Source: Selaginella moellendorffii (Eukaryota; Plantae; Lycopodiophyta). From it: a stretch of DNA of 64,000 nt. Location of the stretch: positions 539,476 to 603,475 of the forward strand of contig NW_003314302.1 in the NCBI RefSeq assembly GCF_000143415.4, in the 5' to 3' direction. The translations under genes were made by a program, and so were the position numbers. Shown here one piece after another: positions 25,291-60,369 of the stretch (its first letter is position 1; each line of letters starts with the position of its first letter). Below the pieces are notes generated by a model. That model was not told the origin of the DNA. It saw nothing but the letters and a program-made list of their open reading frames with translations, and did no database searches.

Positions 25291-25339
25291 AAAGAATCCG
25301 CGGGAGAAATATTCATCGCACAAGACCTAGCTTGGCAGC

Positions 25340-26174: not shown

Positions 26175-26211
26175 CGGTCCTGACCAAATGGCTTGCTTGA
26201 GCATCGTCTTC

Positions 26212-26572
26212 TTACCTTCTCTCGTATAAGCTTGCCATCATCTGGTAAGCTGTGTCGCCGGCTTTGTCCATTTTCAACAACGCATCGAATGCCAGCCTTC
26301 CCAGAGCAACGTTTCCAGACTTGGAGCAGGCACTTAAAACTCCCATCCATGCTACAGCACTCACTTCTCCTTCACGAGGCATGGACTCGGCCATGGCCAC
26401 AGCGTCGTCCAGTTCATCAGCTCTGCAAAGTATATCGACCATGCAAATGCAATGATCGCGACCAGGATTCACACCATACCTTATGCGCATCTCGCCGAAA
26501 TACTTTTTGCTTCGCTCGACCAGCCCGGCATGGCTGCATGCCGTGAGGAGAGCCACAAAGGTGGCCTCGTCC
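26212..26572 (-). pseudogene. C-terminal fragment of a PLS-class PPR protein (last repeats plus E domain)
   Basis: DEATFVALLTACSHAGLV, HCICMVDILCRADELDDA, AWMGVLSAC, AYQMMASLY. Confidence 0.9.
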
Positions 26573-26575
26573 GCT

Positions 26576-28574
26576 CAAAGTCGGGGCTCTGGCAGGAACT
26601 GTAGACGACGAGACAGTTGTCCTCGTCCGGAACGACCAACGCAGTCTGTGGTTCCATGTAGAAATAGTACTGCGACCCTGTGCGCACCTGGAAGTTCCAC
26701 TCGTGATCAAAACGTGCTTGCAAAAGAAAAATTGCTCCGTTTTACCTCAGCGTTTTCGATCTTAAGACTGGCCTTGGCCATCTCTTCGGCAACATTACCG
26801 TGTTTGTCCTTCATCACATCCTTGCAAAACTGTGGGATCTCGTGGAGTTCCCCTCTGGCAACCGCTTCTTCCATGGTTAGCACGGGAGAGCCGACAGACT
26901 CCGTGTCGTAATCAATCACAACTTTGCCGGCGGCGGCCTTGGCGTTTCTCAGCGTGTCCGCAATCTGGACGAGAACAGGTTTAAAATCAATGGATTCGTC
27001 CGTAGCTTACCATAAGTCCGACGGCATGGCCCACGCACTCGACTTTGTCCTCGGCGAAGAGCTTTTCTTGAGAGAGATCGGAGACGAGGCTCATATTCTG
27101 TCCGCCAGAAGGAATGTCATCAACTCCAACGAAGGACACCGCGCCAGGCGAAGCCAGTGCATTCTCCAGCCGGATTCCGTTTACCTTGGCCAATGCTTTC
27201 GTACTGTAAACATAGACTGCGTGCACGCAGTCCCTCGGAGCTGGAATATCATCCACGTAAATAGCTTCACCGGAAGAGAAGTTTTAAGAACGAAAACTAA
27301 AACCAAAACAGAACAGCTTACCTGAAGCTTGAAGCTCTCCCATAACCTTGGACATTGGCTGTCCGACAGCTCCCTGGAGATGTTCTTGCAATGTCTGTCT
27401 CCCAGACATGATCTTTCTTGACGACCTCGGGATGCTTCCATTCTGGGCCTGTGTAATATACGGGAGCTCAGGTACAATGCTGCTGCTTGGAGCGGCTAGA
27501 GAGCTTAAGAACTTGAAGAGGAAGCTCGCAACAAGCGAAGACCTGTAGTCGGCCTTCGAGGTCCCCTTCTTCGGCACTGCACTGGAACTCCAGCTGGGGG
27601 TGTGGAGCCGGGCACTCGAGGTCTGACCTCGGCTGCCCATGGTGTTTTAGTGGCCGCGTCAACACGGATGTTAGGCGTTGTGGACGTTGATGACGAGTTC
27701 TCAAATAGAAACCTTCGCGAGCTGGATGGCCTCCAACATAACTCCACTGTCCACCACCTTCCCTTCGAGAAACCTCTCAACTTCAGTAGCACGCTGACAA
27801 GTAGGCTCTCCTCCAAAAGCACCGAACGCGAGCCTCGACTCGCAAACTCGTCCGTCACCCGAGAGATTGACGAGAAACGCCGCATTCACGTAAGCCACGG
27901 CGTTTCCGAGAGGCCGAGGTGATGCCCTGTATGAGTCAAACCTGACGTTGTCCTGCTTGCTGTAGGATGGGATGCAGATCGACTTTAAAATGCTTTTCCC
28001 GTCCCATGTAGCTGCCACAAAGTCCTCCACAGACTGCCGTGATTCTCCAAACTTCTGCGTCACCACCTTGACCGAAGCGCCGGCTCCAACCAGCAAAGTC
28101 GCAATGTCGGAGTCGAAGCCGAGCTTTTGTGCCAGGATCAGATTTCCTCCCACACTCCCCGCGTTTCTTACGTGCAAAGTTGCCACTTTTCTCATGTGCT
28201 CGGCCAACTTGAGATAAACTCCGCTCGAATCACTGCGGCCAAATGCTTCGAGGAGAGCTATAAGCTTGGATATCTTCACGGCAGCACCGACTTCAATCCC
28301 ATCCTTGGTAGCTTTCTCCTCCAGGACCTCTGGAACGGCACCGATCTCTATGAAAACTTCCGGACTGGACTGGAGATCGTCCTTGTAAATCCCTGTGCTG
28401 GTGTTTCCAGCTACGAGCCTGGCCGTGTCTTGATACCTCTCGAGCATCGTGAAAACTTCCTCCAAACCACCCGGTCGAATCCATTTCTTCGTAGAACCCA
28501 GAGCAACGAGAGAGTGATCCTGATGATCCAGAAAGTCGGGGAACCGAGAACCTTCCAGTCCTGGATTGTAGCCC
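26576..28574 (-). pseudogene. Partial duplicate of the aldehyde oxidase gene (FAD domain and start of the Moco domain)
   Basis: Near-identical to 42670-44543 including introns. It lacks the 2Fe-2S region and the 3' half, and has a 126-bp insertion at 27579-27704. Confidence 0.95.
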
Positions 28575-28577
28575 AGC

Positions 28578-29097
28578 GAACAGAGAGCTGGCCTATTTCT
28601 TCTTTCCTGTCCACGCGTCCGGTGGGTCACGTCATAAGAGCTTGTGTTAAATCAAACCACGTCGTCGTCGTGGAATGGTGGTTTTTTAAAACGCATCTCC
28701 CACCCACTTATAGGATCATCAGAGGAAAGGCAAGCAAGCACAACCCCAGCAATGATGCCTCAGGGCATCTGCAGCTTATTGATACCTTGTGTTCCACCAC
28801 CTTTTCTATGCTAAACGAATCTGCTTTACAAATGCACGGAAAACTGTTTCATGTTGTTTACGACCTTCCACATTCTACATACTCAATTCCCCCAGATCCC
28901 CTGGAATCTGTGTCCCCACCCTTCTGAAATTTATAGACAATTGTTAAATAAACAGTGTTATTAATTGAAACAAACCAGTAGTATTATGATGTTGCACATG
29001 GAAAGAGTGGCTTTGTAGAATTAAATTCCTTGTTACTCTTAGTGATGAGCATATGCTAGACATCCAAAGTGCAAATGCAAAACCTTCAACTATGTAT
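28578..29097 (-). repeat. Duplicated upstream region of the aldehyde oxidase gene
   Basis: Colinear with ~45249-45880, with indels. Confidence 0.9.
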
Positions 29098-32000: not shown

Positions 32001-32476
32001 TGGTCGACCTAGCAAACCCATGCTAATTAGCTTACCTTCGGCACGCCTTTGGGTCCCAACATATGCCACTTGCTCAACTTTGCAAATTGATATTTTAATT
32101 GAACTTTGCATAAGTACATAGAGTTCTGCCTTGCAGAAATTCCTCCATTAGATCTCGCACGTTCGCTAGGTTCTCCTTTGGTTCCCATGTTGCCTCGCAG
32201 TGTGGAAATCCTTTCCACTTCACATAGAACTCTCTCACCTCGCGTCCTTGTCGCTTGCTCTTGCGCGCATTGAGGATGTCTTCAACTTCGTATTCCTCTT
32301 CCCCTTGGATAACCTCAGGTAAAGGTCTCACTTGGTCCTTGCGAAGCGGATCCTCAAAGTACGGCTTGAGTAAGTTCACGTGGAACACCGGGTGCATCTT
32401 CCCCATCTCTCAAGGAAGTCGGAGACGGTAAGCCACTTTACCGATTCGTGCCTCAATCTCGTAAGGCCCCGCAAAC

Positions 32477-32528
32477 CTGCTTAAGGAACTCAAGATCACT
32501 TCATTTATAGGAATACATGCATTTTTAC
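32477..32528 (-). other. Putative 52-nt GT-AG intron in the integrase GPY/F module
   Basis: CAAAG|GTAAAA...TTAAGCAG|GTTTGC. Removal gives KLTQRFAGPYEI. Confidence 0.75.
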
Positions 32529-32946
32529 CTTTGGGTCAACTTTCGGCTGATCCCACTTGGTAGCCTGAGGTTCTTGGTGTTCAGCCACACCTTCTCCCCA
32601 GCTTGGAACTCTACATCCCGACGCTTCTGGTTCGCGTACTTGGTTTGCCTTTGTTGAGCTCGTTCCAAGGAATCCCTCACTAGATTCCAGATGTTGAGTC
32701 TTTCCACCGTGAATGCCTCCACTGCGGGTAACTCTCCATGATACTCGGCCTCGCCGAGTTCCACAGGACCTTCAATAGCTTGCCCATTGATGACTTCCCA
32801 TGGACTCACCCCGATACTCGAATGTCGTGAGTTGTTATAACACATTTCCGCGAGTCCCAAATGACTTACCCAATCGGTCTGGTCTCCCAAGACATAGCAT
32901 CGCAAATAATCCTCCAGCTGCCTATTCACCCTTTCTGTTTGTCCGT

Positions 32947-32993
32947 CTGTCAAGAAGTGTTAGTGCCATCCAGCTTGACTTAATACCCCATAC
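32947..32993 (-). other. Putative 47-nt GT-AG intron in the integrase core
   Basis: GACAG|GTATGG...CACTAAC..TTCTTGACAG|ACGGAC. Removal gives STTYHPQTDGQTERVN. Confidence 0.8.
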
Positions 32994-35900
32994 CTGTCTG
33001 TGGGTGGTAGGTTGTGCTGAATTTCAACTTGGTGCGATATTATTCTAGGAGAGTTCTCCAGAACCTACTAGTGAAGATCTTATCTCGATCTGAGATAATC
33101 TCTTCTGGCCTTCCCTGTACTCGAACCACTTGTTTGAAGAACAGCTTTGCCACACCTTCCGCATCCACTTCCGTTGTGGTGGGTATGAAATGTGCCATCT
33201 TCGAAAATCGGTCCACCACCACGAATATCGCATCAAACCCCTCGCTTGGGGGAAGTCCCATGATGAAGTCCTTCGTAAGACATTTCCACGGACAATCTAG
33301 AATTGGGATGCTTTGCAACAAGCCCTCACTAGCCTTAGTCACGGCTTTGACCTGCTGACATGTTGGACATGTCTTTACATAGTCTTGGACGTCCTTAGCC
33401 ATATCTGACCAGTGATACTTCCTCTTGAGTAAGCCCATTGTTTTGGGCACTCTGCCGTGTCCCGCAAGAGGTCCATCATGACACTCTTCTAAGGCTACCT
33501 TCTTTAGTTCCCCTTCTAGGACATACACCCTCGTTTGCTTGTAATAGATGAGTCCGTTGCGTTCCGCATAGCCCGTTTTCTCTTCCGTTGGCAGCTCACT
33601 TCTCTGGTGAGCTTCCCGTGCCTCTAGATTCCTTAGCAACACTTCTTGTGCTAGACCATCGTTCTCATATGCTGTCCGCACATCGTCCCAAAAGGTTGCT
33701 GTCGCACTGGATATCGCCAACTTCAAGCTCACTTTTCAACTTAGCGCATCTGCCATGATGTTGCTCTTCCCAGGCTTGTACAGGATTTTGCAATCAAACT
33801 CGGCCAAGGCATTGGCCCACCAACCCTGTTTCCCTCTCAGGTCAGGCTGTGACAAGAAGTGTTTCGTTGCCACATTGTCCGTGTAAACCTTGAAGTGTCT
33901 CCCAAGGTATGTCGCCACTCCTTGAGCACCTTGACCACCGCAAACAGTTCCTTCTCGTGGGCAGGCCACTTCCTTTGAGCCTTGTCCAACTTCTTTGAGA
34001 AGAACGCTATTGGATGGTTGTCTTGCTTCAAAACTGCACCCAACGCAAAGTGCGAAGCATCTGTTTCTACCTCAAAGTCCTTACCAAAGTCTGGTAATGC
34101 CAACACGGGAGCCTTCCTCAACTTTCTTTTGAGGTGGACGAATGCCGCCTCGCATTCCGCTGTCCATACCATCTTCCCTTTTCCTGTTTGGTCCGTTAAG
34201 GGCAGGGCTACTCTCGAATAGTGTCTGATAAACTTTCGGTAGTAGTTGCATAGCCCCAAGAATGCCCTCAAATCATGTACATTCGATGGTCGCTCCCATT
34301 CCTGGATCGTTTGGACCTTCTCTGAGTCCACCTTGAGCCCGTCCTGGCCCACCATATGCCCGAGAAACTTTACCTTTTGTTGAGCAAAGTCACATTTGCT
34401 CTCTTTAGCATACAGTTTGTGTTCCCTTAGTTTCTCAAACACCTTCGCCAAGTGTTCAGCATGCTCCTCTAGTGTCTCGCTATAGATCAGGATGTCGTCG
34501 ATATAGACGACCACAAAGTGATCTAGATAGGGTACAAAGATGTGGTTCATCAGCGCCGAAAATGTTGCCAGCGCATTACATAGCCCGAAGGGCATCACTA
34601 GAAACTCAAAGCTCCCATACCTCGTGTTGTCTTCTCGACATCTTCCTCGGCTACCCTGATCTGGTAGTATCCTGACCTTAGGTCAATCCTCGAGAAGTAT
34701 TTTGCCTTTCCTAACCTATCGAATAGGTCCTCAATCCTTGGCAAAGGGTACTTGTTCTTCTTTGTATACTTGTTGAGCAACCGGTAGTCTATGCACATGC
34801 GCATAGATCCATCTTTCTTTTTCACAAATAACACCGGCACCCCATACGGTGACTTGCTCAACCTAACATACCCTTTGTCCACCAACTCCTCTAGTTGGCA
34901 CTTGAGCTCCTTGAGTTTTTTTTCATTCAAACGATAGGGGGGACGAACCACTGCCTCAGCACCCTCGACCAGCTCAATCTTATGTTCTATCGGTCGTGCG
35001 GGGGGCAACCCCGCCGGTAGCTCCTCCGGCATGGTATCTTGGAATTGGTCCAACACCCGCTGAATCACTAAAGGTACTTCTTCTGTTCCTGTCTTTTTGT
35101 CACTCTTCACCGAGAGTAAGCACAAAAATGCTGCCTTAGTTCCTTTAGTGAGTTGTCCTGTCGTGGACACCAGGTTTAAGCAGGAATCTTTGGCCTTTCT
35201 TTGCCCTACCTTTAGATCCTGGGCCTCCACCCTAGATCTTCTTCCTTGGGCATTTGCCAGTACCACAAGGTTTTTAGCTTGTCCATGCAGGGCTACCACG
35301 AACCGATTGAACCAATCCATTCCGAAGATCACGTCAAATCCCACCATGTCCAACACGGTGAAATCTATGTCCACCTTCCAAGTCCCCACTTCGACTCTTG
35401 CTTGTCGAAGTACCTCATCGGTGCTTTGGCTACATTGAACAAACTCTATAGTCCTTGGTTCGCCTAGCCGCTGCACTGTTAGTCCAGCTTGCCGAACTAT
35501 GTCTGCAGCCACAAAATTATCCGAAGCACCCGTATCAATAAGGATCTTAACAAAGCTACCTCCGAGCTTCCCTCGGAGGGCTAGTAGATGTCACGAATGA
35601 CTCTCTACCAAAGTTGCTTGTGTAATGAGTAACTTTGAGTTAGGGATTGGATCACATACCTCAGTTTGGACTTCACCCGACTTGATGGCCATATTGGCTC
35701 TGGCCTTCTTCGGGTAGGGACATTCCCTCGAAAAGTGTCCCGCTTCACCACAGTTGTAGCATACGTTGTTTCCCACACTGCTATACGACTTGACCTTCTT
35801 ATCTGTGGGTTTGTCTCTTTTTGCTTGACTCCCCCACATACTCGCTCGCTGGCCACCGGATTTGCCTTTCCGAAACCCCGAGAACTCATTCTTAGAGAAA

Positions 35901-38900
35901 CTCTTCTTGAATTTCCCTTGGCTATACGTTCCCCTTGGTTTGGCCCCTTTGCTAAACATAGACCCCGACCCCATTGTGTTTCCCTTTCGCAGGTTATCGT
36001 TGAAATGCACCTTGATGGCCGCATCCAATGCTTCCTTGTAGTTGGTCGGGTTCCACCGCATCACCTCACCGCGAGCCCAGGTTTGCAAACCTGATATGAA
36101 GGCATGGAACGCGTCCATATCCCCCATATCCGTGACAAGTATCCTCTTTGCCATAAACCCATTCATATACTCCTGAATGGTCCCAGTCTACTTCAGCCTA
36201 CTCAGCTTGTCTCTTAGATGCAGAGTAGCATTCGGAGGAATGTAAGTCGCGCGGATCCTCGCCTTCATCATTTCCCAAGTGGCCATTGGTCCTTCGTTAG
36301 CCTCTGTCGTTCTCCACCAAGACTTGGCATTATCTGCCAAGTATGGTTTTGCATATGGGACCTTTTCCGAGCTTGGTAACCGCAACGCTCGGAAGTAGTC
36401 CTCCATATCATAAAACCAATCTTCCACCACCTTATAGTCATTCACTCCCTTGAAGACTAGTGGGGGCTTTGGTTTGTACTTGGGAACTACCTGAGAGACT
36501 GATTTCACTTCGGTCTGTTCGACCTTGTTTGGTTCTGCCTCAGTCCCTACCGAAGGGTCCGCACCCTCTGCGCTGCCAACATCCGCAGTCTTTCGCTTTT
36601 TCTTCCGCTTCTCATCACGCTTTAACTTGCGTACGAGAGTCTCTAGCAGGGCATTGGTTTATGCCAATTGTTCTTCTAGAACGTCCAATCGAGCCTTGGA
36701 TGACCGAACCTCCCCACCGGACTCCTGTTTGGAAGTTGCCTCACTGGAGTCCTCCTCATGCAAGGATTCCTCATCCATAGCCTCTTGTTCGACCGGAGGC
36801 TCTAGCTTTGGAGGAGGTTCTGTCTCCGCCTTGGTTTGTTTCCGCTCTACCTTTCCCATCTCCCAGCAATCCGCCTCTATCCTTCGCTAGAACTGAGGAA
36901 AAGGCTCCGATACCAAATTGTAAGCCACAAATTTTTCCTTTCCAATTTGCCAGCTTACCTCGTCTATCCGACCAACACTGCCTTGGCTTGTGCTAAGTTC
37001 CCTCGCCAAGGTTCTCGCCTATTGTACCAGCTCCTACTTGGTCCTACTTGGTTTCAGCTACTCACTGCACGAGCAACGGAGAGTTAGCCTTCCATCCACG
37101 GATTCCCAAATCTCTCCCAATTCCCCCCCCCCCGGGTTAGACTGGACTTAAGGTTCGGCTACACTCCCCGCAGGCACAAGCAGCCAAGCACACCAAGCCT
37201 CCAGGTTCCTAACACCCCTTGGTACCACAAGACTTGATCATGGGACCCTCTAAATCCCAAGCCTTGGATGCAACACTTGCTTCGGGACATTGAGGCAAAA
37301 CACCGTGGCCTAACGGCCCGGTATGGGTACCTTTACCCCCCCACTTCCATCCCGAAGGGAAGGCCCAAGCCCCTAGGAAGGGCAAGGACCAATGAGCCAT
37401 AAGGTACTCAAGTGGGGCACCACTTCACATGAGCCGGGAGCACCGCAGTCAGTTTCCCTTTCGGGAGCGGGAGCTGCTCTTGAGCACTTCCCTGGGTGGC
37501 CCCTCCGGCACCACCCAAGCCCATGCTCACTCCCACCCAAGGCCCCTCGGCCCCAGTCTCAACCTCAAGTCAGTTTGGAAGCACCACTAGAGAGTTCCTT
37601 CAAGACTGGTTCTTGAACCTCACTATCCCTACTATACTTTTGGAAATCCCTGCAGCCTCCCCCCCCCCCCCTGGGAGATGCATGCTTTGGGCTTTCACCC
37701 CTTGACTCGTATTAGTATTTGGACTTAGTCTCAGATTTGATCTCGGACTCGATCTCGGACCCGACTTCGGATTCGGTCTCGGACTCGATCTCGGACTCAA
37801 TCTCAGACCCGATCTCATACTCAACTTCAGACTCGACCTCGGACTCGGTCTCGAACCCGATTTGGACCTCGGACTTCGTCTCGAACTCGGTCTCAAACTC
37901 GGTCTCCGATTCGGCCTCGGCTCGATCCCGGACTCTATCTCGAACTCGGTCTCAGAGTCGGTCTTGGACTCGATCTTCGACTCGGTCCCATCCGATGAAC
38001 TCTTTGTCATTTCGGTCACGCTTTCGGGGATCCTTTAGCCTACGACATTTCGGGGAATCGGTTCCTTACACACCAGCCATAAATGATCATTAGGATTCAT
38101 CCCCACAAAATAAAGAAGGTCATCTTCAAGAAGATATGGAGAATGTAAATGTTAGAATGGCAAGTCATTAGCAAGTGATGCAGGATTCTCAAACTTTTCT
38201 TAAAGCCTTTAAATCCATTGCTCAATCTTTTGGGCCTCTTGAACCTCATCAAGAGAAGGTAGATCTTGCACTACACCTTGTGGACATTGAACGTCAAGTA
38301 CAACAACCACTAACAGCACATAAATTTCATCTAGAAAATCCACAGATGTAGAATAATAGGCTCGTCTGAAGCATGAGAAGCGAGCAAAAAAGGAAAAAGA
38401 GCTTAAGAAAGGGCATTAGTATTAGTCATAAAACTCCCTGGGCGATGAACAATATCAAAATCATATATCTAAAGCTTCAAAACTCACTAAGCAGTATGAC
38501 CAACTAAATTCTTCTGCTTCAATAATGAAGTAATAGCAGTATAATCACCTTTTAAAAACGTTCAAGAATCATGTATAAAGTTTTTTGAAACCCCAGACTA
38601 TTACTAAACACTCCTTCTCTGTCGTGGAGTAATTCACCTTTGCTAGTTGTAATGTACAACCGATTTATGTAATGGGATGACATTGATCAGGCACACTCGG
38701 GCTCTCTTGCATCAGCATACTACCAAAACTAAATTTAAAACCATCCACACGCAAAATAAAAAGTTGAGTATAATCAAGATATACCAAAACCAAAGGAGTC
38801 ATCAATAACATTTTGAGATCCCCTACTACTTAAGCCTGCCATGTGAATTCTAGTGAAGACTCATTTTTTTGTTGACACAGAAACTGCACAAAGACTTGCC

Positions 38901-40606: not shown

Positions 40607-43600
40607 TTAAGCTTTGAGATAAAGCTCTATGTTTTCGACGCCGCAGAGCATTCGCACCTTGTCTATCGTGGCTGGGGCGTCCAGCTGGAAATAAGGCTCC
40701 GGATCGCGGAGGTTCTTACGAGCAGCAGCTATGGCGTGCCTGAGAGCACCGTGCACTGACGATGCCAGGAGCAAAGGTGGCTCTCCAGAAGCTACACAAT
40801 TCAAGGAGCTCGATCAAGACGATCGCTAAGGAACAGCATAGGAAAGAAAGGAGTGGAGGCTTGCCTTTGGATGACAGTATCCTGTGCTCGTGAACTTTGC
40901 TGTTGAGGAGCTCCACATTGAGACGGCGAGGTAAGTTGTCCAGCGTTGGAGGCTTGTACGTCCATGTTCCATCGTTTATAAGCTTTCCTTGCTCGTCGTG
41001 GCGATGCTCCTCGGATGTAAAGAATCCCACGCCTTGAGCAAACGCACCCTCGATCTGGAAATGAAGAATCTCTCTAAGAGCTTGCAATAGTTTCTGGAAA
41101 TATGTTACCTGTCCAATGTCCACGGCCGGATTTATGCTCTTCCCACAGTCGTAGACAATGTCGGTTTGGAGAATTTCGTACTCGCCAGTGAGAACATCGA
41201 TCTCAACCTTGACAAGAGAAAATCCAAGCCATGGATGAAACCAAAACAAAACAAAAAATAAGAAAATGAAAGAACAAGAGATGGATAAAACGATCTTACC
41301 TCACTAGCAGCAGCACCATAGTTTATGTACGTCAGGGCCTCAGGCGACGAAACGAAGGCAGTTTGCGCGGCCATCTCGACCCGAGCATTCTTTGCCTGCA
41401 AAACATTAAAGGATAGAAACGAAAGCAAAAATCAAAACAATCACAAACTTACAGCAAGAACGAGCGATTCCCACGACGACACCGTCTCTCCATCCCGGCA
41501 CTCAGCCATTCTCTTCTCATGAATCGGCTTAAAGCGGTTGACGAGCACCCGGCAAGCCTGCCGCACGGCCTCGCAGCTCGCCTCGGACGTGGTACTACCG
41601 CCAGTCCATCCACCGTGCGGCATGCTAATGGTATCCGCCTGGACCACCCGGACTCTCCCTACGTCCACGCAAATTCCACCGCCGAGCCCCTCACCCAGCG
41701 CGCTCGCCGCCGCCTGCCTCACTTTGGTCCACAGCCCCTGTCCAATCTCCACGCCGCCAGTCTCCACCACCACGGATCCATCCGCCATGATCGACACTCT
41801 CCCTGGCTGGTACCTCTGCTGCACAGTGTACGTGCTCTGCGACACCGCCACCCCGCGCTTCTTCCAAGCATTGGCTGCGTTGTATCTCTCCACTTCACGT
41901 AGCCGCTCGTCAACGTTTGCTCGATCTTTCAGCCGCGACCAGACCGCCGGGAGAGTGTATCCTTCCTCGCCCCCAACCGCGGCCGCGCCGTAGGCCGCCC
42001 CGGCGCTCTCGACCGAGTGGAGGTTGCGCTCCATGACGAGCTCCGAGCTCAAGTTTGTGAGAGCTGCGACGTGCTCGACCACTGCGTCGGCGAAGAAGCA
42101 GCCTTGGACGTCGCCCGGGGCGCGCATAACCGTCCTGCTCGGGATGTTGGTCCGGCACAGCACGAACTCGAAGGAGAAAGCTCCCCAGTTGAGCTTCTTA
42201 AGGGCGGAGAGCACCCCCATTGGCATGACAGGGGTGAATTCTGGCGACCAGCCTCCTTGGATGAAGATCTTGGCGTGGAGGGCGTTGATCTTGCCGTCGG
42301 GCTCGAAGCCTACGTCGTAAACGGCCTTCATTGGGTGCCTTCCACCCATCATGATCATGTCTGTGTTGCGGTCGAGAGTGAGGCGGACGGGGCGGCGGAG
42401 TTTGTACGCGGCGAGTGCGCAGGCAGAGGCAACCTGCACGATTCATGCTTAGAACCAAGGGTGTAAAAGGGAATGCGAGAAAACGAAGATGAGAAAAAGG
42501 AAGTGCTCGCAACAAAAACCATAGTTTTGATGCAAGAAGATGCAAAACTGTAGACTACTTACCAGGCAGGCTTTGGTGCCTTTGCCTCCAAATCCTCCGC
42601 CAACTCGTCGGGTGATGACTCTCACGTTGTGCATGGGCAAGCCGAGGCAGGCTGACACGCTGTGTTGCACAAAGTCGGGGCTCTGGCAGGAACTGTAGAC
42701 GACGAGACAGTTGTCCTCGTCCGGAACGACCAACGCAGTCTGTGGTTCCATGTAGAAATAGTACTGCGACCCTGTGCGCACCTGGAAGTTCCACTCGTGA
42801 TCAAAACGTGCTTGCAAAAGAAAAATTGCTCCGTTTTACCTCAGCGTTTTCGATCTTAAGACTGGCCTTGGCCATCTCTTCGGCAACATTACCGTGTTTG
42901 TCCTTCATCACATCCTTGCAAAACTGTGGGATTTCGTGGAGTTCCCCTCTGGCAACCGCTTCTTCCATGGTTAGCACGGGAGAGCCGACAGACTCCGTGT
43001 CGTAATCAATCACAACTTTGCCGGCGGCGGCCTTGGCGTTTCTCAGCGTGTCCGCAATCTGGACGAGGACAGGTTTAAAAATCAATGGATTCGTCCGTAG
43101 CTTACCATAAGTCCGACGGCATGGCCCACGCACTCAACTTTATTCTCGGCGAAGAGCTTTTCTTGAGAGAGATCGGAGACGAGGCCCATATTCTGTCCGC
43201 CAGAAGGAATGTCATCAACTCCAACGAAGGACACCGCGCCAGGCGAAGCCAGTGCATTCTCAAGCCGGATTCCGTTTATCTTTGCCAATGCTTTCGTACT
43301 GTAAACATAGACTGCGTGCACGCAGTCCCTCGGAGCTGGAATATCATCCACGTAAATAGCTTCACCTGAAGAGAAGTTTTAAGAACGAAAACTAAAACCA
43401 AAACAGAACAGCTTACCTGAAGCTTGAAGCTCTCCCATAACCTTGGACATTGGCTGTCCGACAGCTCCCTGGAGATGTTCTTGCAATGTCTGTCTCCCAG
43501 ACATGATCTTTCTTGACGACCTCGGGGTGCTTCCATTCTGGGTCTGTGTAACATACGGCAGCTCAGGTACAATGCTGCTGCTTGGAGCGGCTAGAGAGCT

Positions 43601-45203
43601 TAAGAACTTGAAGAGGAAGCTCGCAACAAGCGAAGACCTGTAGTCGGCCTTCGAGGTTCCCTTCTTTGGCACTATACAAATCTTCGCAAGCTGGATGGCC
43701 TCCAACATAACTCCACTGTCCACCACCTTCCCTTCGAGAAACCTCTCAACTTCAGTAGCACGCTGACAAGTAGGCTCTCCTCCAAAAGCACCGAACGCGA
43801 GCCTCGACTCGCAAACTCGTCCGTCACCCGAGAGATTGACGAGAAACGCCGCATTCACGTAAGCCACGGCGTTTCCGAGAGGCCGAGGTGATGCCCTGTA
43901 TGAGTCAAACCTGACGTTGTCCTGCTTGCTGTAGGATGGGATGCAGATCGACTTTAAAATGCTTTTCCCGTCCCATGTAGCTGCCACAAAGTCCTCCACA
44001 GACTGCCGTGATTCTCCAAACTTCTGCGTCACCACCTTGACCGAAGCGCCGGCTCCAACCAGTAAAGTCGCAATGTCGGAGTCGAAGCCGAGCTTCTGTG
44101 CCAGGATCAGATTTCCTCCCACGCTCCCCGCGTTTCTTACGTGCAAAGTTGCCACTTTTCTCATGTGCTCGGCCAACTTGAGATAAACTCCGCTCGAATC
44201 ACTGCGGCCAGAAGCCTTGAGGAGAGCTATAAGCTTGGATATCTTCACGGCAGCACCGACTTCAATCCCATCCTCGATAACTTTCTCCTCCAGGAGCTCT
44301 GGAACGGCACCAATCTCTATGAAAACTTCCGGACTGGACTGGAGATCGTCCTTGTAAATCCCTGTGCTGGTGTTTCCAGCTACGAGCCTGGCCGTGTCTT
44401 GATACCTCTCGAGCATCGTGAAAACTTCCTCCAAACCACCCGGTCGAATCCATTTCTTCGTAGAACCCAGAGCAACGAGAGAGTGATCCTGACGATCCAG
44501 AAAGTCGGGGAACCGAGAACCTTCCAGTCCTGGATTGTAGCCCGGCAGGAGATTTCTATCCGGCGTATCTCCCAGCTTCCAGTAGGAATTTATCCCGAGG
44601 TCCTCAAGATCCACATCGCTGGAGAAGCTCTTGCAAATATCGGAGATCGGCCTATAGCCCGTGCAGCGGCACAGATTCGCAGCGATGGATTTCTCCAAAT
44701 CCACCGTCTGCGTAGGCCTGGGCTGCGATCGCAGCGCGCCGTAGAGCGACATGCACATACCCGGCGTGCAAAATCCACACTGCGAGCCATGGAACCCCGC
44801 AAATCTCTTCTGGATCGAGTGGAGCCCGTCGCGGGAGTTTCCCAGGCCTTCAATCGTCGTGACGGCACAGCCGTGGAGCGAGCAGAGAGGCGCCAGGCAC
44901 GAATTCACGGTGAAATCCTCGCTCTCGCCGCGGGAGGCGCTGTGCTTGGACACAAGAACCACGCATGCTCCACATCCTCCTGCTCGAAATATGGGGATTC
45001 CAGAGCTCAGAGCGATCAATCGATGAATTCTTACCCTCGCCGCAGCCGAGCTTGGTGCCCGTGAGCGCCGCCTCGTTGCGGAGGAATGCGAGCAGCGTCA
45101 TGGAGGGATCGACATGGTGGAGCTCCACGCGATTTCCATTCAACGCGAAGACGAGAGATCCTTGCGGCGGCTCCAAGCAATCTGGAGATGGAGAGCTTCC
45201 CAT
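40607..45203 (-). CDS. Plant aldehyde oxidase (xanthine oxidase family molybdo-flavoenzyme, AAO-like), multi-exon
   Basis: 2Fe-2S motifs GCGEGGCGAC, QCGFCTPG and NLCRCTGY. FAD domain LVAGNT and GSVGGN. Moco motifs YFYMEPQTA, GGGFGGK, MRAPG, GGSTTSE, GQIEGAFAQG and KASGEPPL. Introns are short (for example 44980-45034). Confidence 0.95.
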
Positions 45204-45720: not shown

Positions 45721-46871
45721 TCCCCTGGAATCTGAATCCCCAAATTGTTAAATAAACAGTGTTACTAATTAGTATTAGCATATGGAAAGAATGGCTTTGT
45801 ATAATTAAATTCCTTGTTACTCTTAGTGATGAGCATATTCCAGACATCAAAAGTGCAAATGCAAAACCTTCAACTATGTACAATAATTTGCTACATGTTG
45901 CATGTAGCAATGCTTAGTTTGTTTAATAGTTACTTATTAATCCAATTGATCAAAGAAAAGTTTATAATTTATAAACATAAGATTAATCTTATTGCATATC
46001 AACAATTAGATGGTAGAATAAATAATTTGCTACGTGTTGCATGTAGCAATGCTTGGTTTTCTTAATAGTAGTATTATTTCTACTTATTAATCCAATTGAT
46101 CAAATAAAAATTTAGAATTATAAACATGTTTATAATTTATAAATACAAGATTAATTTTATTGGTAGAGTATACTAGAAAGTGTTTAAGAAATTTTATAAA
46201 TTATAAACATGTTTATCAATTATAAATACAAGATTAATCTAGATAAATAACAACCGTTGGATAGTAGAATATCCTAGAATATCCTAGAATATCCAAGAAT
46301 ATTCTAGATATATGCTCATCCCTTACAGGTTTGCTTAAGCAAACCAAAAATACAAATTTAATCGAAATAATATCGTAAACAAAACAGTTGTACATAAATG
46401 TAAGTAAAATTGTTTGCCATATACTGACACAAATCCAAGCTGAAATTAAGTGTGAGAAAAGAAACGAATGACAATCATTGAGTGATATCTGGCTCGGCAG
46501 CCAGCTAGAACATGCCGAACCTGTCGTATGCCACCTCCGCACCACCAAATCTTATGATCAAAATAAGATTGGGCCATCGGCCTGGCTCAGGTTTCACACT
46601 CGGTCAATTGGGCCATGTCGATCAAGCTGATATATATTAACACTATTGCCGGCTACCAAAGAGCAAATTTTAACAAAGAAAAATGGACTTTTAATAAAAT
46701 ACGGGATCGTGTCCATTTATGTGAACAAGTCGCCGTCTAAACAAGTTGTGACCTGTAAAGCAAGGTTAGACACGCTTCTCTGGGCAGGCCATGCAATTAT
46801 AAATGAGTCCCTCCTTGACCGCCTAAGTTTTGGAAGTCTTGCTGGGAGCAAAGCTAGAGCCGCCCACACCT

Positions 46872-46879
46872 TATAAATA
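46872..46879 (+). promoter_or_regulatory. TATA box
   Basis: TATAAATA about 40 bp upstream of ATG 46913. Confidence 0.6.
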
Positions 46880-46912
46880 AAGGGCTCAAGATCTATCAGT
46901 CACTTAGTAACC

Positions 46913-47283
46913 ATGAAGTCGATGAACATGGCGCTAGCTCTCAATGTCTTACTTGTGAATCTCATGATCATCATGTTGTTGCGGGGCTCTCATGCTCAGG
47001 ACTCCTACTCGCGCGCTGGCTCTACACTGTGCAGGGACCTCGCACAGAGCGACTGTGATGCTGCTCGCCGCCAGATTCAGCCTAGCCCGGCGGCAGCAAA
47101 GGCTCCAGCGGCGTCTGCTCCGGCCACTGTGGCCTCTTTGTCTCTGGCTCCAACTGCGACCTCAATGGCTCCGAGATGATCACTGCCTTTGACGAACCCC
47201 GTGCTCGCAACTGCGCCAAGTGTGGTATCAAGACTTACAATGACGGCTGCCAGTTCAAGGCGGATTATGTCACAGGTTGCTAA
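46913..47283 (+). pseudogene. KP4 killer-toxin-like secreted cysteine-rich protein, frameshifted at ~47087
   Basis: Signal peptide plus QDSYSRAGSTLCRDLAQSDCDAA in frame 1. GVCSGHCGLFVSGSNCDLNGSEMITAFDEPRARNCAKCGIKTYNDGCQFKADYVTGC* in a second frame (47089-47283). Confidence 0.7.
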
Positions 47284-47689
47284 GCGCACTTTAAATCTTC
47301 TCAAGAAAACTAAAAATATATATACGACGGTATGTCTGAGCTTGGCATAAAAACGATTCTTCGGTCGTTTCTTTGCTATCCGAGGTTCTAGATTCCCGTG
47401 GGTGTATCAGGAAATAAAAACAGCAACAATTTGATGAGAACCAAAGTGGAAAGACAAGCAATCAAGTAAGCGCTGGGAATCTTGCGCTCTTAGTTTACAG
47501 TTTCTTTGCTCTGTCAGTGAGGCTCCCAACCAGGTCGAGCCTACAATAAGATGAACAAACGAGGAATGCAGCTCCATATAGGATGCGCAAGCTCGCAGAT
47601 CTGGACAGCAAGAACAGCAACGGTATAAACACAACTCACAGAGTAAAAGTTCCAGCTTATCACAACAAACATCTAAGATCCAATCAAAA

Positions 47690-48500
47690 CTTAGAATGAT
47701 GAGGACGATGAAAGTGATAAGGGAGTGCATGCGCTGCCATCAGCCCATGTATAAACACAGCAGGTGTCCATGAAGCTACATGTGTCACCTGTTGGCGTTC
47801 AGGGCAGTGGTATCTGGCGAGGACGACATCTTCTTCGCGATCGCCTTCTAATCCACATCACAGTCCGAGTCGCTATCCGCTAGAATGACGTGGCAGCGTC
47901 AACACGAATACAGATTTGTGCCCCAAAAGTCGATGAGGAAGAATTGTTCATGGGCATCTTCCTGCGACTCGATGTTGATGCGAGTGGTGGCGCTGCTCCT
48001 GGTACTGCATTTCTTTCAGGAAGCAGTATGTTCTCTGGGACCGTTCGAGCCCACTTCTCTGCCTCTCGCCCGCCTGTCTACACAGTTTGGAAGATGCTCT
48101 GTTGAGGAGGTTGATAGCATTGAGACGATATGTGGATCCTGAGACAGGGATTTATCGGATTGCAGTGCTCAACACCAAGACAGTGAGTGTTTAGGGAGTT
48201 TGTTGTCCACCCTTTCCAGTACAATTCTGGCTCCGGAAGCTGGGGGAATCCATGACTTGTCCAATCCTGACTGAGGGAGAGGATCGCTTCTATGACCTGC
48301 TACAATGGAGTCTGGCAAGCGGTGAGCCAGGATCCATTCGGCTACTGGCAGATATTGTGTGAGGATTTTGCTGGTACAAGCGTGCTAGCTAGAGAAGGAT
48401 GAGGATGGCTCACACTCAGCCATGGTCGCATCTGGGAAATATTACTGGCCACTTCGTGATATCAACATGGGAGGTGAAGAATGGATGGGGATGATGTGAT
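47690..48500 (+). pseudogene. GC-richer gene-like remnant, product unknown
   Basis: Coding-like composition with short broken ORFs and no recognisable motif. Confidence 0.25.
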
Positions 48501-49179
48501 TGTTGTTGCCAACTGTATGGGATAATTTTGTGTTCTTATCTGTATTGTGGTCATTTGGAAAAAGAGTTTGCATATTTTTTTACCCGTGACCTATACATTT
48601 GCACCAATCTCAAAATTGGAGAATTAGATTTACAAACTTTATATTTATGCTATAAGTGTACAATTATAATATTGTATATTAATATTAGTGTAATGGGATT
48701 TTAATAATTGAGATTGTCAAAATCTTGTGCATGCATTTTCAGCCACTTTTGATTATGCCTTTTGTTTAGCACAATGTTATGAAATGTCATTTCTTCCACT
48801 TTTTACTACATATCCTTAAACTTTACTTCCTGTGGGAGATGGTTATATTCCAATAGAAGTTAATATTGCTGTTACTTGAGTTTCAATTAAGACAACCACT
48901 TCAAGTTTCTGACCTCATTTTTGGTATGGATTGATTGTGGTGCAATAATGCCAAATGTGACTTTAAGGTTTCTTCTCTTTATCTCGTACTTCTTTATATT
49001 TTTTCCATTCCTCTCACTTTTATACCTCTTCATTCTTTTATTTTTACCTTTGCTTCCATCACTTTTATTTCCCCTTTACATCCTTTTATGTTTCTATTTT
49101 CTTCCTCTCTTCCCTTTTCCAATCCTTTCGATAATCTTTATATTATAGTAGTTTACCAGCTCATAAAGGAGTATGCCAA

Positions 49180-53730: not shown

Positions 53731-55227
53731 TGTAAGTGACTAAATTTTCCATTTTACTTTAGTCACTTAACCACACCTTTGACTACTTGGAGGAGTCTCA
53801 CTCACAACCTTCGTAAGTCCTATTTTGGACTTAAGGACTTGCTAGCCCCAAGAATGGCATCTATGCCACTCAACCATTGCACTTGGTCCAAATGCTCCAC
53901 GTGTTCAATCCCATGACCGACACCCCAAGGTACCACTAACATACTAGCCTGTTACACTAAGGCTATACCCATTCACCTTGATCACACCGGTGGTCCAACA
54001 CCACCTACATCACAGTCTCGTCTCTCAAAGACTGTGCCATCCATCCATGAGTGACCATTCTAGGTCCACTCTTTAGCATCCTTAAGATGCCTGCAGACAT
54101 GGGGAATAGTCTTCCCCAATATCCTTTTTACAATCCCCACCAAGTCTCTTTTTTATCCATTGCCAACACTGCTACTGGGACAAGGCCCATAGGCCCGACT
54201 ACTAAGTCCCACTGTCGTCTGGGACTTCCTCACCATATGACTGTATCATTGGTCATTACACCAGAGGACCACTCTTCTTCCTTTCTATAGTCTGGGACTT
54301 TGGGATAACATTTCGAAACATCGTGGCCCTACGTGAACCTCATGGGTACTCTCCCCACCTTCCGCTTTTGGGTACTCTAGCCATGGGCTTAGAGCGAGGT
54401 TCCGTTGAGCCACACCATGTATCCAAATAGGTAGTGCCACCCACACTTGGACTGGGAGCATTGGCCATTCGATCTCCTAGGGGAACTAGAGTTGGCTTTT
54501 GAACACTTCACCAAGCTACCTTGCTTGTCAATTCGTATTCACTCTAACCTTGAACTTCCCAATGGTTATCCCATCACCTAACACCTGGGTACGGCCTTCC
54601 TGGGCCAAACTAGCTCCACTGAAGTCCTTCCCCTACTATACTTTTGGAGCTCACCAGACCCCCTAGGGTCTGGGAGACGAACGCTTTGGGCTTTCACCCT
54701 CGGACTCGAACTCAGGCTCAGATTTGGACTCGGACTTGGACTTTGTCAGGAATCCCCCAATTCTTGCCACATTCCTGACTCTCGCCGAATTCCTGACCTG
54801 CAAACCACATTCCTGACTCTCGAGACACTTCCCTATTCCTGACTCTCGAGACACTTTCCTATTCCTGACTCTCGAGACACTTCCCGATTCCTAAGTCTCG
54901 AGCCACATTCCTTATGATGATATGGTGCCTCCTCGACCTCAGCTATATTTAGGCCGTCCTCGATCCAAGAGTGGTGGAGCTTCATCAACCTATAGTATAT
55001 ATAGGTTAGCCTTGTTCCATTTCTCCACAATCTGAATCAACACCAGTCTAAGGCCTCTTCTTTGTTTTCACTAGCTTTTTCTCTTTGTCTTTAGCATTTT
55101 CCAGTTTTGATCTTGTTGGAGGCCTTGACAGTTTGATTCAGAATGTGGTTTTTGCTTTTCTTTTAGCTCGCTTTGATTATTTGATTACCTTTGTCTTTTT
55201 CCCCCTTTCTTTTCTTTCTTCTTGCCA

Positions 55228-56199
55228 ATGGAGTCTCCAAGCCATCCTGATTTCTTTGCTGAAGTCCTTGCAAAAATCCAGTCTGAGAATACCGAGCTGA
55301 AGGCGACCCTTCTTCGCATGCAGCAGGAGCTTGCTTCACTTTCGGCTCAAGGATCCAGCAAAGTTCCTGAACCGAAGGTGAGATTCCCGGCGAAATTTTC
55401 AGGCAAGCGTTCGGAGCTTCGCGGATTCCTGAACCAGATGGAGTTGATCTTCGCACTTCAACATCGGCAGTACCCTACTCCCGAGTCTCAAATCGGCGCG
55501 ATTGGGACGTTGCTCGAAGGTGCAGCTTTGTCATGGTTTTCTCCTCTTCTGGAGAAGAGCATGAAAGGGGTCGTGGTTCCAGAGCTAATGGATCTTCAAT
55601 TGTTCAAAGAGAAGCTCGAAGCATGTTTTGGCGAGACGGATCGGGTTCGGGCTGCTACCACAAAGATGAGACGTCTCTCTCAGGGGTCTCGTCCTGCCTT
55701 GATTTACGCTGCAGAGTTCCAACTCCTTGCTTTGGACACTCAGTGGGATGAGCGGGCCCTGATTGACCAATTTCGTTTCGGCCTCAACAACGGTGTCAAG
55801 GATTTGTTGCTCACCATGGAGGATCCCAAGAACCTGTCGGATGCCATCAACAAAGCTGTTCGATGTGACAATCGTCTCTTTGAACATCGTCAGGAAAGTC
55901 GCTGCGCCACTATTTTTCCGTCCTAGACTCAGGAATCCCAGCTTGAGTCTTCGGGGCATACTCTTGAACCTACTGCTCTGGTTCCAATGGATATTTCTGG
56001 TACTCCCCGACTCATTAGAGGGAAGTTGAGTCCTGCTGAGAAGCAACGTCGAATATCTTATAATCTTTGCCTCTATTGTGCTGATCCTAATCACAAAGCA
56101 GCTGTATGTCCCAAGAAGCCTCCTCGACTGCTCGAGTTCACTCTGCCTCAAAGTCCACCTCTATTGCAGTCGGGAAACGACCCTGTCCAAACAGAGTAG
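55228..56199 (+). pseudogene. gag (PEG10/sushi-like capsid plus zinc knuckle), one internal stop at 55924
   Basis: PAKFSGKRSELRGFL, LEGAALSW, FRFGL, PMDI, CLYCADPNHKAAVCP. Confidence 0.92.
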
Positions 56200-59100
56200 G
56201 AGCTGTCTGTTTGGACTCCCCGAATAAAAATCACTTTCCTTCTTTATCAAGCTCCTCACCACCTTTCATCAAAGCCACCACCAATTCCTGCAACTTCCAC
56301 GTCCCATGTCTCCTTTCTTTCACCGGACAATCAGGACTCAAAGCTCTGGCATTACTGGACTCGGGTGCAACTTCCTGCTTCATGGACACGGACTTTGCTG
56401 CCCGACATCATGTTCCTCTTTTTCTTACCATACGGGATTTGAGGGTTGAAGGCATCGGCGGGCATTTTGTGTCTCCATCTTCTGGACTTAGGGAAACGTT
56501 GCCCGTTCGAGTACACATTGGGTCCACCGTCACCGATATCGCCTTCAACATCATCAACAGCAAGTCCTCCTCTGTGGTGCTCGGTCTTCCTTGGTTCCAA
56601 CTACATCAGCCTTAGATCTGTTGGAAGGAATTACAGCTCATCTCTCCCACGGCTTCCCCTGCTATTCATCGAGTCCGAATCAGGAAAAGTTCCCTAAACT
56701 CAAATCGGGGTTCTGTTCCTGACTCTATAAAGTTTTCACCCGCTTCTTTTTCCTCTCTTCCATCTTACACTGGAACGTATTCTCATCTCATCATTCCATT
56801 TAGTCGTACGCCTCCTCCTATCTATACAATCACTATGAAAGAACTCCTTCATGAAGAACCTCTTTTTCTTTTTGCTTTGCATGTTTCTCCTATCAGTCTT
56901 CCTGAGAAGTATCATGATTTTGGGGATGTGTTTGACAAGAAAAAAGCTAGTGTACTGCCTGTTCATCGGCCTTATGATTGTCCCATTGATTTACAGGAAG
57001 GAGCGTCACCTCTGTGGGGGCCTATCTATGGGTTAGCCCCGTCCGAGCTTAAGGCCCTCAAAGAGTACGTGGATGAGAACCTTGCCTCGGGCTACATTCA
57101 GCATTCGCAGTCCCCGGCTGGAGCACCTGTCTTCTTTTTCAAGAAGAAGGATGGGAGCTTGCGGCTAGTCATCGACTACCGAGGTTTGAACAAGGTGACT
57201 ATTCGGAACCGTTATCTGCTGCCCCTGATCTCGGACCTGTTGGAACACCTCGGCGGTGCCCGCTTCTTCACCAAGATCGACCTCCGTGGAGCATACAACC
57301 TGATCCGGATCCGGCCTGGTGATGAATGGAAGACTGCGTTCCGAACCCGCTATGGCCACTTCGAGTACACTGTCATGCCATTTGGCTTGACAAATGCTCC
57401 AGCAGTTTTCCAACACATGGCAAACGACGTCTTTCGGGGGTTTCTTGATCAGATGGTGATCGTCTATCTCGATGACATCCTCATCTACTCAAAAACTCAG
57501 GAGGAGCATGACGAACATGTTCGCAAGGTGCTAGCGAAGCTGCGAGAACATGGCCTATACGCGAAGCTTGAGAAATGTTCCTTTGATCAGTAGTCTGTGG
57601 AGTTCCTTGGGTACATTGTCACTCCTGAGGGTATCACGATGGATCCTGCCAAAGTTAAGACTATTCTCGAATGGGAGCCTCCACAATCAATGTCGGACGT
57701 TCAGGTTTTCCTTGGCTTCGCCAACTTCTACCGCAAATTCATTGATCACTACTCTGACATTGTCCTTCCTCTCACACATCTCACTCGCAAGGATGTTCCC
57801 TTCTCTTGGTTTACTGTTGCCCAGCAGGCCTTCGACACACTCAAGGCGGCCTTCAGTTCTGCTCCTGTCTTGATCCATGCTGATTCCTCACAACCTTTCT
57901 TCATCGAGGCTGATGCCTCCGACTTTGCCATTGGTGCTGTGCTGTCTCAACTCGGAGCGGATCACGAACTTCATCTGGTCGCTTTCCATTCTCGGAAATT
58001 CCAGCCTGTGGAGATCAATTACGAAATCCACGACAAGGAGCTCCTTGCCATCGTGGATTCCTTTGGAGAGTGGCGCCGTTTCTTGGAGGGGGCGAGCCAT
58101 CAAACAACAGTCTGGACGGATCACAAAAATCTCGAGTACTTTGCCACTTCCCGAGTTTTAAGCCGTCGTCAAGCAAGGTGGGCACAATTCCTGAGTCGGT
58201 TTGACTTTGTTATCAAGTACAGACCTGGAAAGTTTCAAGGCTTTCCTGATGCTCTTTCAAGGCGCTCCTATCTCAGTCTCAGGCCTGGTAATCCTGCCTT
58301 CGATCAACAGGATCAAGTTATCCTCGGTCCTGATCGGCTTCAAGTTATGGCAATTTCCCTGGCCCCTCAGGACTCCTCCTTGATGGATGCAATCAGAAAC
58401 GATCTTCAATCCGATGATCTCGCTAGCGACATTTTCCCCCATCTTCAGGCTGGACACCCAGTGACTCCCGACTGCCGGTGATTTGACGAGTTCGAGTTCT
58501 TAGATGGCTTATTGTACCATGGGGAGCAGCTTTATGTTCCTGAAGGTGATGCTCGAAGGTTGGTCCTGATGGCGTGCCACGATAGCCCGACTGCTGGTCA
58601 CTTCGGCATTGCGAAAACCTATGAGCTAGTTGCACGGGATTTTTGGTGGCCTCACATGGACGACTACATCAAAGCTTTTGTTACCTCCTGTGACACTTGT
58701 GCCCAGAATAAGGTACCTCGCCACCTTCCTTCAGGTTTGCTTCGTTCCCTTCCGGTCCCTTCAGGTCCTTGGGAATCCATCTCCATGGATTTCTTGAGTG
58801 ATCTTCCGAGTTCTGGAGGCTTCAACAACATTTTAGTCGTGGTGGATCACTTCACAAAGATGGCGCACTTCTTGCCATGTACCAAGGAGTTTTCGGGCGA
58901 GGACATGGCAAAACTGGTATTCAGGGAAATTTTCCGACTTCATGGGATTCCTACAGATGTGGTTTCGGATCGGGGGCCTCAATTCATCTCTCATTTCTGG
59001 CAACAGTTTTTGCAGCTGCTTGGAGTGAAGGCCAACCTCTCTTCGGCATATCATCCTCAAACTGATGGGCAGTCCGAGCGAACGATTCAGACGTTGGAAC

Positions 59101-59850
59101 AATTCTTGAGGTGCTTCATCAACTATCATCAGGATAACTGGTTTGATATCCTTCCCCTTGCTGAGTTCTCCTATAACAACTCTGTTCACTCCTCTCTTCG
59201 AGTTTCCCCCTTCTTTGCGAACTCTGGCCGAAATCCCCGATTCAATCTCTCACTTCCTTCTCCATCTGAATCCTCTCGTTCAAATCCCCGCTCTGAGGCA
59301 TTTATCTCTAACCTCCAAGAAATCCACAACTCCATCTCCTTCCACCTCCATCGTGCTCAGGAATTTCATAAAACATTTGCCAATGTCCATCGTCAGGATT
59401 GTCCCCCTTACAATATCGGGGATAAAGTCTGGCTCCTTAGGCGAAATATCTCCACCACCAGGCCCTGTCCAAAACTCGATTTCAAATGCCTTGGTCCTTT
59501 CCCTATCACTGCCATCATTAATCCTGTCACTTATCGCCTTGCACTTCCCTCCTCATATCAAATTCACCCCGTTTTTCACTCCTCTCTCCTTGAGCCTTAT
59601 ATTCCCAGTCCTATTCCAAATCGGGTCATTCCTCCGCCTCCACCAGTGCAGCTCGAGGATGGGTCTGAGTACGAGGTTCAGGACATCCTTGATTCCAAGA
59701 TTTCACGGTCTAAACTCTACTATCTGGTGGACTGGAAGGGTTACGGACCTGAGGAACACACTTGGGAACCTGCAGACAACCTGCTTCATTCTCCTGACCT
59801 TGTTTAGGACTTCCACCGCCGCTATCCTTCTCGTCCCAGTCCTCATTCTT
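56172..59850 (+). pseudogene. pol (PR-RT-RH-IN-chromodomain) with a few stops
   Basis: LLDSGATS, YLDD, EADASD, HHCC, VSDRG, YEVQDIL..YLVDWKGYGPEEHTWEP. Confidence 0.95.
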
Positions 59851-60369
59851 TTTCTCCATCTCCCATCCCTCGCCGCTCATCTCATCCTCCTCTTCGTTCT
59901 CGTTCACATCCTAGTTCCACTCGTTCTTGAGGAGGGGGTGCTGTCAGGAATCCCCCAATTCTTGCCACATTCCTGACTCTCGCCGGATTCCTGACCTGCA
60001 GACCACATTCCTGACTCTCGAGACACTTTCCTATTCCTGACTCTCGAGACACTTCCCGATTCCTGAGTCTCGAGCCACATTCCTGATGATGATATAGCGC
60101 CTCCTCGACCTCAGCTATATTTAGGCCGTCCTCGATCCAAGAGTGGTGGAGCTTCATCAACCTATAGTATATATAGGTTAGCCTTGTTCCATTTCTCCAC
60201 AATCTGAATCAACACCAGTCTAAGGCTTCTTCTTTGTTTTCACTAGCTTTTTCTCTTTGTCTTTAGCATTTTCCAGTCTTGATCTTGTTGGGGGTCTTGA
60301 CAGACTTGGCCTCGGCCTTGGCTTTGGCCTCGATCTCGGTCTTGGTCCTGGTCTTGGTCTCGGTCTCGA

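Follow-up and report, generated by a model that had tools for sequence, protein, structure and literature searches.

KP4, the killer toxin of the Ustilago maydis virus P4 (1KPT), is a small secreted protein rich in disulfides. According to a structural survey of its superfamily, UmV-KP4 blocks the uptake of calcium by Ustilago as well as mammalian L-type channels, and moss KP4 alters calcium gradients (PMC12382754). Within the KP4 structural superfamily the same survey separates a PF15474 cluster from the PF09044 'group 1', which holds UmV-KP4, the KP4L proteins of Fusarium and three KP4 proteins of Physcomitrium patens (PMC12382754). The moss KP4 genes that were described as fungal acquisitions are PF09044 proteins, and the plant DUF26/ginkbilobin-2 proteins are grouped with KP4-like structures as well (PMC12382754).

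The present study deals with a disrupted gene at positions 46913 to 47283 of a 64,000-nucleotide stretch of DNA from Selaginella moellendorffii, which is referred to as the window. Its family is MU117 (PF15474), in Pfam the 'meiotically up-regulated gene family'. Public databases already list plant members, which are labelled as hypothetical proteins and assigned to PF15474, and the searched literature contained no paper that links PF15474 to plants. The window copy is very probably a pseudogene that originated as a recent dispersed duplicate of a MU117 gene, which encodes a presumably secreted ten-cysteine protein with the KP4 fold.

Reading frames and features of the disrupted copy

Translation of the stretch from 46913 to 47285 in three frames shows that the coding signal is split between frame 1 and frame 3 (Table 1). 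Frame 1 begins at 46913 with the leader, continues with ..GSTLC..SDCD.. and ends in an Ala/Pro-rich tail, which is a by-product of the frame shift. In the protein alignment the leader (MKSMNMALAL..) is common to the paralogs SELMODRAFT_429946 (P0056) and SELMODRAFT_431177 (P0057), and the conserved domain begins directly after it in all relatives. Frame 3 encodes, from about 47086 onwards, 65 residues with seven cysteines and reads ..GVCSGHCGLFVSGSNC...NCAKCG...DGC...DYVTGC. A frame change at about 47087 had been proposed in the first-pass annotation, and the two parts (46913-47086 in frame 1, 47087-47280 in frame 3) indeed match the MU117 profile in order. The TATA box named there lies in a promoter stretch that, according to the DNA alignment, is kept in two paralogs (L004 geneB and L005) and replaced in a third one (L004 geneA). 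The gene was also correctly described as intronless, because the ORFs of the paralogs are uninterrupted. Searches with tblastn and blastn retrieved no second MU117 copy inside the 64-kb window.

Table 1. Features of the MU117 copy and of its closest DNA relative (positions refer to the window unless a locus is named)
Feature	Position	Strand	Remarks
TATA box TATAAATA	46872-46879	+	About 40 bases 5' of the ATG; in conserved core-promoter stretch; read directly
Segment shared with geneA (GL377687.1)	46898-48573	+	Matches L004 4656-2776 in opposite orientation; blastn
ATG and hydrophobic leader of about 28 codons	46913-46996	+	Translation; probable signal peptide
N-terminal part of the MU117/KP4-fold domain, in frame 1	46997-47086	+	MU117 profile positions 2-25
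Arg codon at the first conserved Cys of the domain	47012-47014	+	Protein and DNA alignments
Break, 13 bases missing, frame 1 to frame 3	between 47086 and 47087	+	DNA alignment, blastn gap count 13, protein alignment
Remainder of the domain, frame 3 only	47087-47280	+	First whole homologous codon at 47089; MU117 profile positions 42-105
Out-of-frame Ala/Pro-rich tail of the 88-codon frame-1 ORF	47087-47179	+	Stop at 47177-47179
Pro codon in place of a conserved Leu, long helix	47197-47199	+	Alignments; P0057 model
Original stop codon	47281-47283	+	Directly after ..VTGC, same place as in relatives
geneA	L004 4258-4641	minus	GL377687.1 of GCA_000143415.2; closest DNA; second MU117 gene

The intact TATA stretch, start codon and leader, which match the ancestral promoter type, and the recent duplication (synonymous distance of 0.025 to geneA) would be compatible with a copy that is still transcribed and whose 88-residue product has adopted a new role, or whose transcript acts as a regulatory RNA on the paralogs. 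We regard this as very improbable, because no RNA run was found to contain the stretch, the tail of the ORF is a plain out-of-frame translation, there is no sign of conservation in the shifted frame, and an exact look-up of the 88-residue frame-1 ORF in the protein collection retrieved no called gene on record.

Assignment to the MU117 family

The two parts of the translation were compared with Pfam at the gathering cut-offs of 30.4 bits for MU117 (PF15474) and 27.8 bits for Kp4 (PF09044). Residues 33-56 of the frame-1 piece (piece 1) match the MU117 profile with an E of 0.063 and 14.5 bits, and residues 7-65 of the frame-3 piece (piece 2) match it above the cut-off with an E of 1e-9 and 39.5 bits (profile positions in Table 1); neither piece matches Pfam Kp4 at E up to 10. 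The full-length relatives reach 54-69 bits over the whole MU117 profile and stay below the Kp4 cut-off with 13-19 bits (13-15 bits for the intact plant relatives). The only one of the tested fungal relatives that passes Kp4 is P0018 from Fusarium with 34.1 bits, and it passes MU117 too. These scores document that the two Pfam families are neighbours and that the window gene is a MU117 gene. Some Atlas clusters mix PF15474 and PF09044.

MU117 is characterized by a ten-cysteine scheme, in which C.GS..C stands close to the beginning and C..CG ... GC ... V..C at the end. The window copy retains nine of the ten family cysteines, and its reading frame through the domain is interrupted by the 13-base gap. 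Its ancestry is nevertheless not in doubt, and the missing first cysteine fits a pseudogene. The N-terminal piece is 81-84% identical to the Selaginella paralogs. SELMODRAFT_431177 and SELMODRAFT_429946 resemble the window copy in the leader, the ten-cysteine scheme (nine of which remain in the window copy), the intronless structure and the promoter stretch; the window copy differs from both of them by the frameshifting gap, the loss of the first cysteine, the proline in the helix and its location at a different locus.

The first-pass annotation had connected the gene with the KP4 relatives of mosses. Since the published moss KP4 proteins belong to PF09044, the family of the window gene is a different plant family.

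Structural similarity to the KP4 fold

AlphaFold2 was used to model the intact paralog P0057, not the broken copy, on the basis of a 48-sequence alignment. The model has a mean pLDDT of 87, with values above 90 through the domain. A Foldseek comparison with the PDB placed 1kpt_A first (E 6.8e-4, TM 0.69 by target, all 105 residues), followed by 8ACX, and 1kpt_A was likewise the top match in VIA-align (Z 12.3, rmsd 2.2 Å, 94 of the 105 residues). The first match outside the KP4 group appeared at Z 6.7, and unrelated entries had Z 5-7. The search of PDB sequences with a sequence profile retrieved 1KPT with an E of 0.087, and insect chemosensory proteins, which share the C..C spacing, were similarly weak matches. 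It is hence the comparison of the modelled fold that establishes the link to KP4, which sequence alone does not prove.

The KP4 toxin and the modelled MU117 protein appear to share the same fold and to be small, secreted, disulfide-rich alpha/beta proteins, but their sequence identity is only about 20% and the MU117 relatives fall below the Kp4 cut-off. The weak signals over the full sequence length, 13-19 bits on Kp4 and an E of 0.087 for 1KPT, are in accordance with the shared fold. The second-best structural match, the effector Zt-KP4 (Zt-NIP1) of Zymoseptoria tritici (8ACX; Z 10.0, rmsd 2.4 Å over 92 residues), differs more strongly: it is a fungal effector with 6% identity that is assigned to Pfam Hce2, i.e. 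to the Hce2/Ecp2 branch of the KP4 superfamily. The cysteine-rich secreted DUF26/ginkbilobin-2 proteins of plants (3A2E, 6GRF) have a distantly similar alpha/beta arrangement, but their Z of 5.2-5.7 is far lower and lies within the common range; they show no sequence relation and do not represent the family of the window gene. Judged from the model, the designation 'KP4-like' is right for the MU117 gene at the level of fold and superfamily, in line with the position of the PF15474 cluster in the structural survey (PMC12382754). Of the KP4 identity proposed beforehand, the fold has thus stood up to comparison, whereas the Pfam family is MU117 and not Kp4.

Lesions of the window copy

The alignment with the DNA of three intact paralogs, all found in S. 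moellendorffii, shows that 13 bases present in each of them are absent after position 47086 of the window copy. Translation is thereby moved from frame 1 to frame 3, and a conserved stretch of five residues is lost. The frameshift postulated by the first-pass annotation is therefore real and located right after 47086, but it is a 13-base deletion instead of a one-base slip. The two amino acid changes suspected there were recovered as well. At the position of the Arg codon, all 15 aligned relatives and the DNA of all three paralogs have a cysteine. The Pro codon replaces a leucine that is found in 14 of the 15 aligned relatives (isoleucine in the remaining one) and is encoded by CTC in the three paralogs; in the P0057 model this site is part of the long helix formed by residues 91-103. 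In the DNA each of the two missense lesions is a change from T to C. C-to-U RNA editing could reverse them, but we think that it is irrelevant here, given that the gene is nuclear and that editing cannot restore 13 bases.

An error of assembly or sequencing, with a gene that is intact in the plant, was weighed against these lesions. The copy has retained its promoter stretch as well as its start and stop codons, and two sets of reads (X3 and X4, 2024 DNA runs with the same organism label) yielded, for X3 as judged from the bin depths, no contig over 47087-47140, although such a hole proves nothing. The loss of 13 bases would be unusual for a base-calling error, however, and two further missense changes at conserved columns fit real decay. 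Moreover, read contig X1 (477 bases, 46955-47431, depth 2), which may stem from the assembly's own sample, carries the 13-base loss and is identical to the window letter for letter across the break. An artefact is therefore very improbable. The X3 and X4 reads gave many short contigs with 90-99% likeness, which appear to be paralogs. One of their loose ends, at 46898, corresponds to the sequence upstream of geneA, and another, at 47086, continues like the intact paralogs. The only X3 contig in the region around 46701 (46625-46788) has a 17-base insertion behind 46701; either this upstream region differs between samples, or the contig belongs to a paralog.

Splicing of a 47-base GT..AG interval (47055-47101) would restore the frame, as 47 equals 2 modulo 3, and rebuild a cysteine codon, but a functional gene of this kind is exceedingly improbable: all paralogs and plant relatives read through the interval as conserved coding sequence, splicing would remove some 20 conserved residues and with them one helix of the fold, the interval is G+C-rich and coding-like, and the 13-base gap fully explains the shift.

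The lesions relative to the paralogs, in combination with the predicted KP4 fold of an intact paralog, thus agree with the earlier description of the locus as a disabled copy of a secreted cysteine-rich KP4-type protein.

Duplication origin and genomic setting

Scaffolds of GCA_000143415.2 match the window copy with 77-94% DNA identity. Its closest relative is geneA, with 93.5% identity over the first 1054 bases and 85-90% beyond, extending over about 1.7 kb in all (blastn). The two MU117 genes of L004 are located between genes for RPE65, RRM/WW and PigN, and P0057 adjoins a purple acid phosphatase gene. The window copy, in turn, is flanked at a distance of about 1.9 kb by a divergent gene of the XDH/aldehyde-oxidase type (41.4-45.0 kb). 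The short match and the differing neighbours therefore identify the window copy as a dispersed recent duplicate and not as the other haplotype of the loci compared; an allelic relationship was rejected for these loci on the basis of the 93.5% identity to geneA, the end of the match after about 1.7 kb and the different neighbours.

In the maximum-likelihood tree the window copy and geneA are sisters (support 99/85) within the Selaginella group, which belongs to the plant clade. The two copies differ by nine non-synonymous and two synonymous substitutions, resulting in a dN/dS of 1.27, and the corresponding value for the intact pair geneB and L005 is 0.32. This contrast, which with 11 differences is not statistically strong, points to relaxed constraint. 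The open frame of geneA comprises 127 codons; in it a nearly invariant cysteine is changed to tyrosine, two new cysteines have arisen and two conserved glycines are changed. From 15 bases 5' of its ATG, the promoter/TATA stretch has been exchanged for other sequence. GeneA is probably another decaying copy, although it is annotated as a normal gene, and the whole sub-lineage of the window copy and geneA looks as if it were decaying.

The window harbors two genes of the XDH/aldehyde-oxidase type on the minus strand (41441-45019 and 24000-28630), which are about 15 kb apart, contain Fer2_2, FAD_binding_5, CO_deh_flav_C and MoCoBD domains and have a Ty3-type retroelement (32-36 kb) between them. 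Pieces of Ty3/chromovirus polyproteins (RVT_1, rve, Integrase_H2C2, Chromo) were located at 55200-60000 on the plus strand and at 32400-36200 on the minus strand. The dead MU117 copy accordingly sits in repeat-rich DNA.

Distribution of the family in plants and fungi

A word-index search with piece 2 that covers proteins of 36-114 residues had no match, which is explained by the length of the relatives (118 residues or more). An exhaustive search with piece 2 of 1.84 billion representatives (E up to 1e-3) retrieved 46 proteins. The best one is P0001 with 127 residues and 88% identity, followed by a protein of Riccia sorocarpa (82%) and by fungal proteins (41-60%) from Microsporum, Neofusicoccum, Favolaschia, Auricularia, Aspergillus, Mycena, Fusarium and others. 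With P0001 as query 29 proteins were found, all of which carry PF15474; they include SELMODRAFT_429946 and SELMODRAFT_431177 of S. moellendorffii and representatives from Marchantia, Riccia, Sphagnum, Ceratodon, Adiantum, Artemisia, Orobanche, Apium, Ranunculus and Cuscuta. Many of the plant genes reside on chromosome-scale contigs (liverworts, mosses, fern, Selaginella and several angiosperms), and the plant proteins are mutually 56-88% identical across liverworts, mosses, fern, lycophyte and angiosperms.

The angiosperm members show a scattered distribution (Artemisia, Apium, Ranunculus and the parasitic Orobanche and Cuscuta). The angiosperm proteins (P0055, P0061, P0063, P0065, P0066, P0068, P0069 and P0071) are 68-84% identical to P0001 and form one clade. 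The scatter reflects either many gene losses or movement between plants.

Three contigs of 1-1.7 kb (L001, L002 and L003) encode intact 127-residue members (P0001, P0047). Their proteins are 88% identical to that of the window gene and their DNA 74-75%, which is indicative of strong purifying selection in another plant.

Phylogeny and possible horizontal transfer

The tree was calculated from 56 sequences and is unrooted; the broken copy was included with an X at the break. The sampling relevant for the origin of the family comprises 46 representatives and 29 word matches. The plant proteins form one starred clade together with nine further proteins (97/96), within which the angiosperm subclade is starred too. 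P0003 and P0080 stand next to the plant proteins, followed by ascomycete and basidiomycete proteins, and all named non-plant matches are fungal. P0003 (L006:636-1094), the nearest non-plant protein, is 70% identical to piece 2. It has a fungal-type leader, a pro-region that ends in Lys-Arg, and the motif P-E-x-I-L-L-D-N-G, which it shares with a Neofusicoccum protein; it seems to originate from an ascomycete. The pro-region of P0003 and the fungal relatives is absent from the plant proteins. P0003 and P0080 could point to the fungal lineage that is closest to the plant clade.

Although fungi account for most of the family, the proposal that the window copy is a recent fungal insertion or a fungal contamination has a next to negligible probability: the copy nests among the Selaginella sequences in a clade of plants only, it is flanked by an XDH/aldehyde-oxidase gene of plant type and by Ty3 retroelements of plants, and it is devoid of the pro-region of its fungal relatives. 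The horizontal acquisition inferred in the first-pass annotation cannot be particular to this gene or to Selaginella, because the family ranges from liverworts to angiosperms within one plant clade; any transfer from fungi must therefore have been ancient and family-wide. A recent or Selaginella-specific acquisition and contamination are both excluded. What is observed fits a single ancient transfer that linked fungi with the land-plant ancestor and after which the family was inherited vertically and lost in places; we infer both this transfer and its direction.

Evolution and possible function

The most plausible history of the window copy would start with the recent duplication of a MU117 gene of S. 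moellendorffii to a dispersed site. After the duplication 13 bases would have been lost in the middle of the domain, thereby shifting the frame and removing a conserved loop, and in addition one of the ten disulfide cysteines would have disappeared and a proline would have entered the main helix. A folded protein could then no longer be made, and the product would at most be an 88-residue polypeptide in which the leader and one third of the domain are followed by a nonsense tail. The copy has thus presumably lost its function.

For the family as a whole we envisage a more far-reaching scenario, whose chances we consider to be about even. MU117 would represent a second plant family of secreted KP4-fold proteins beside PF09044, acquired once from fungi before the split of bryophytes and vascular plants and strongly constrained since then; it would have expanded into arrays with ongoing birth and death in Selaginella, where the window copy is a dead member. 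By analogy with the KP4 proteins, the intact MU117 proteins most likely function extracellularly, as secreted ligands locked by disulfides, and their role may be an extracellular action on the calcium uptake or signalling of fungal cells or of the plant's own cells.

Taken by itself, the stretch is an ordinary pseudogene, of interest mainly because it marks recent turnover in a family of many copies. Such copies escape gene callers, as exemplified by the uncalled frame-1 ORF and a true reading that requires two frames. The family behind it comprises a putatively secreted protein that is conserved from liverworts to angiosperms and has, according to the model, the fold of a killer toxin that blocks calcium channels. 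If its intact members act on fungi or on plant calcium signalling, MU117 would constitute a new class of secreted plant effectors or peptides of probable fungal origin.
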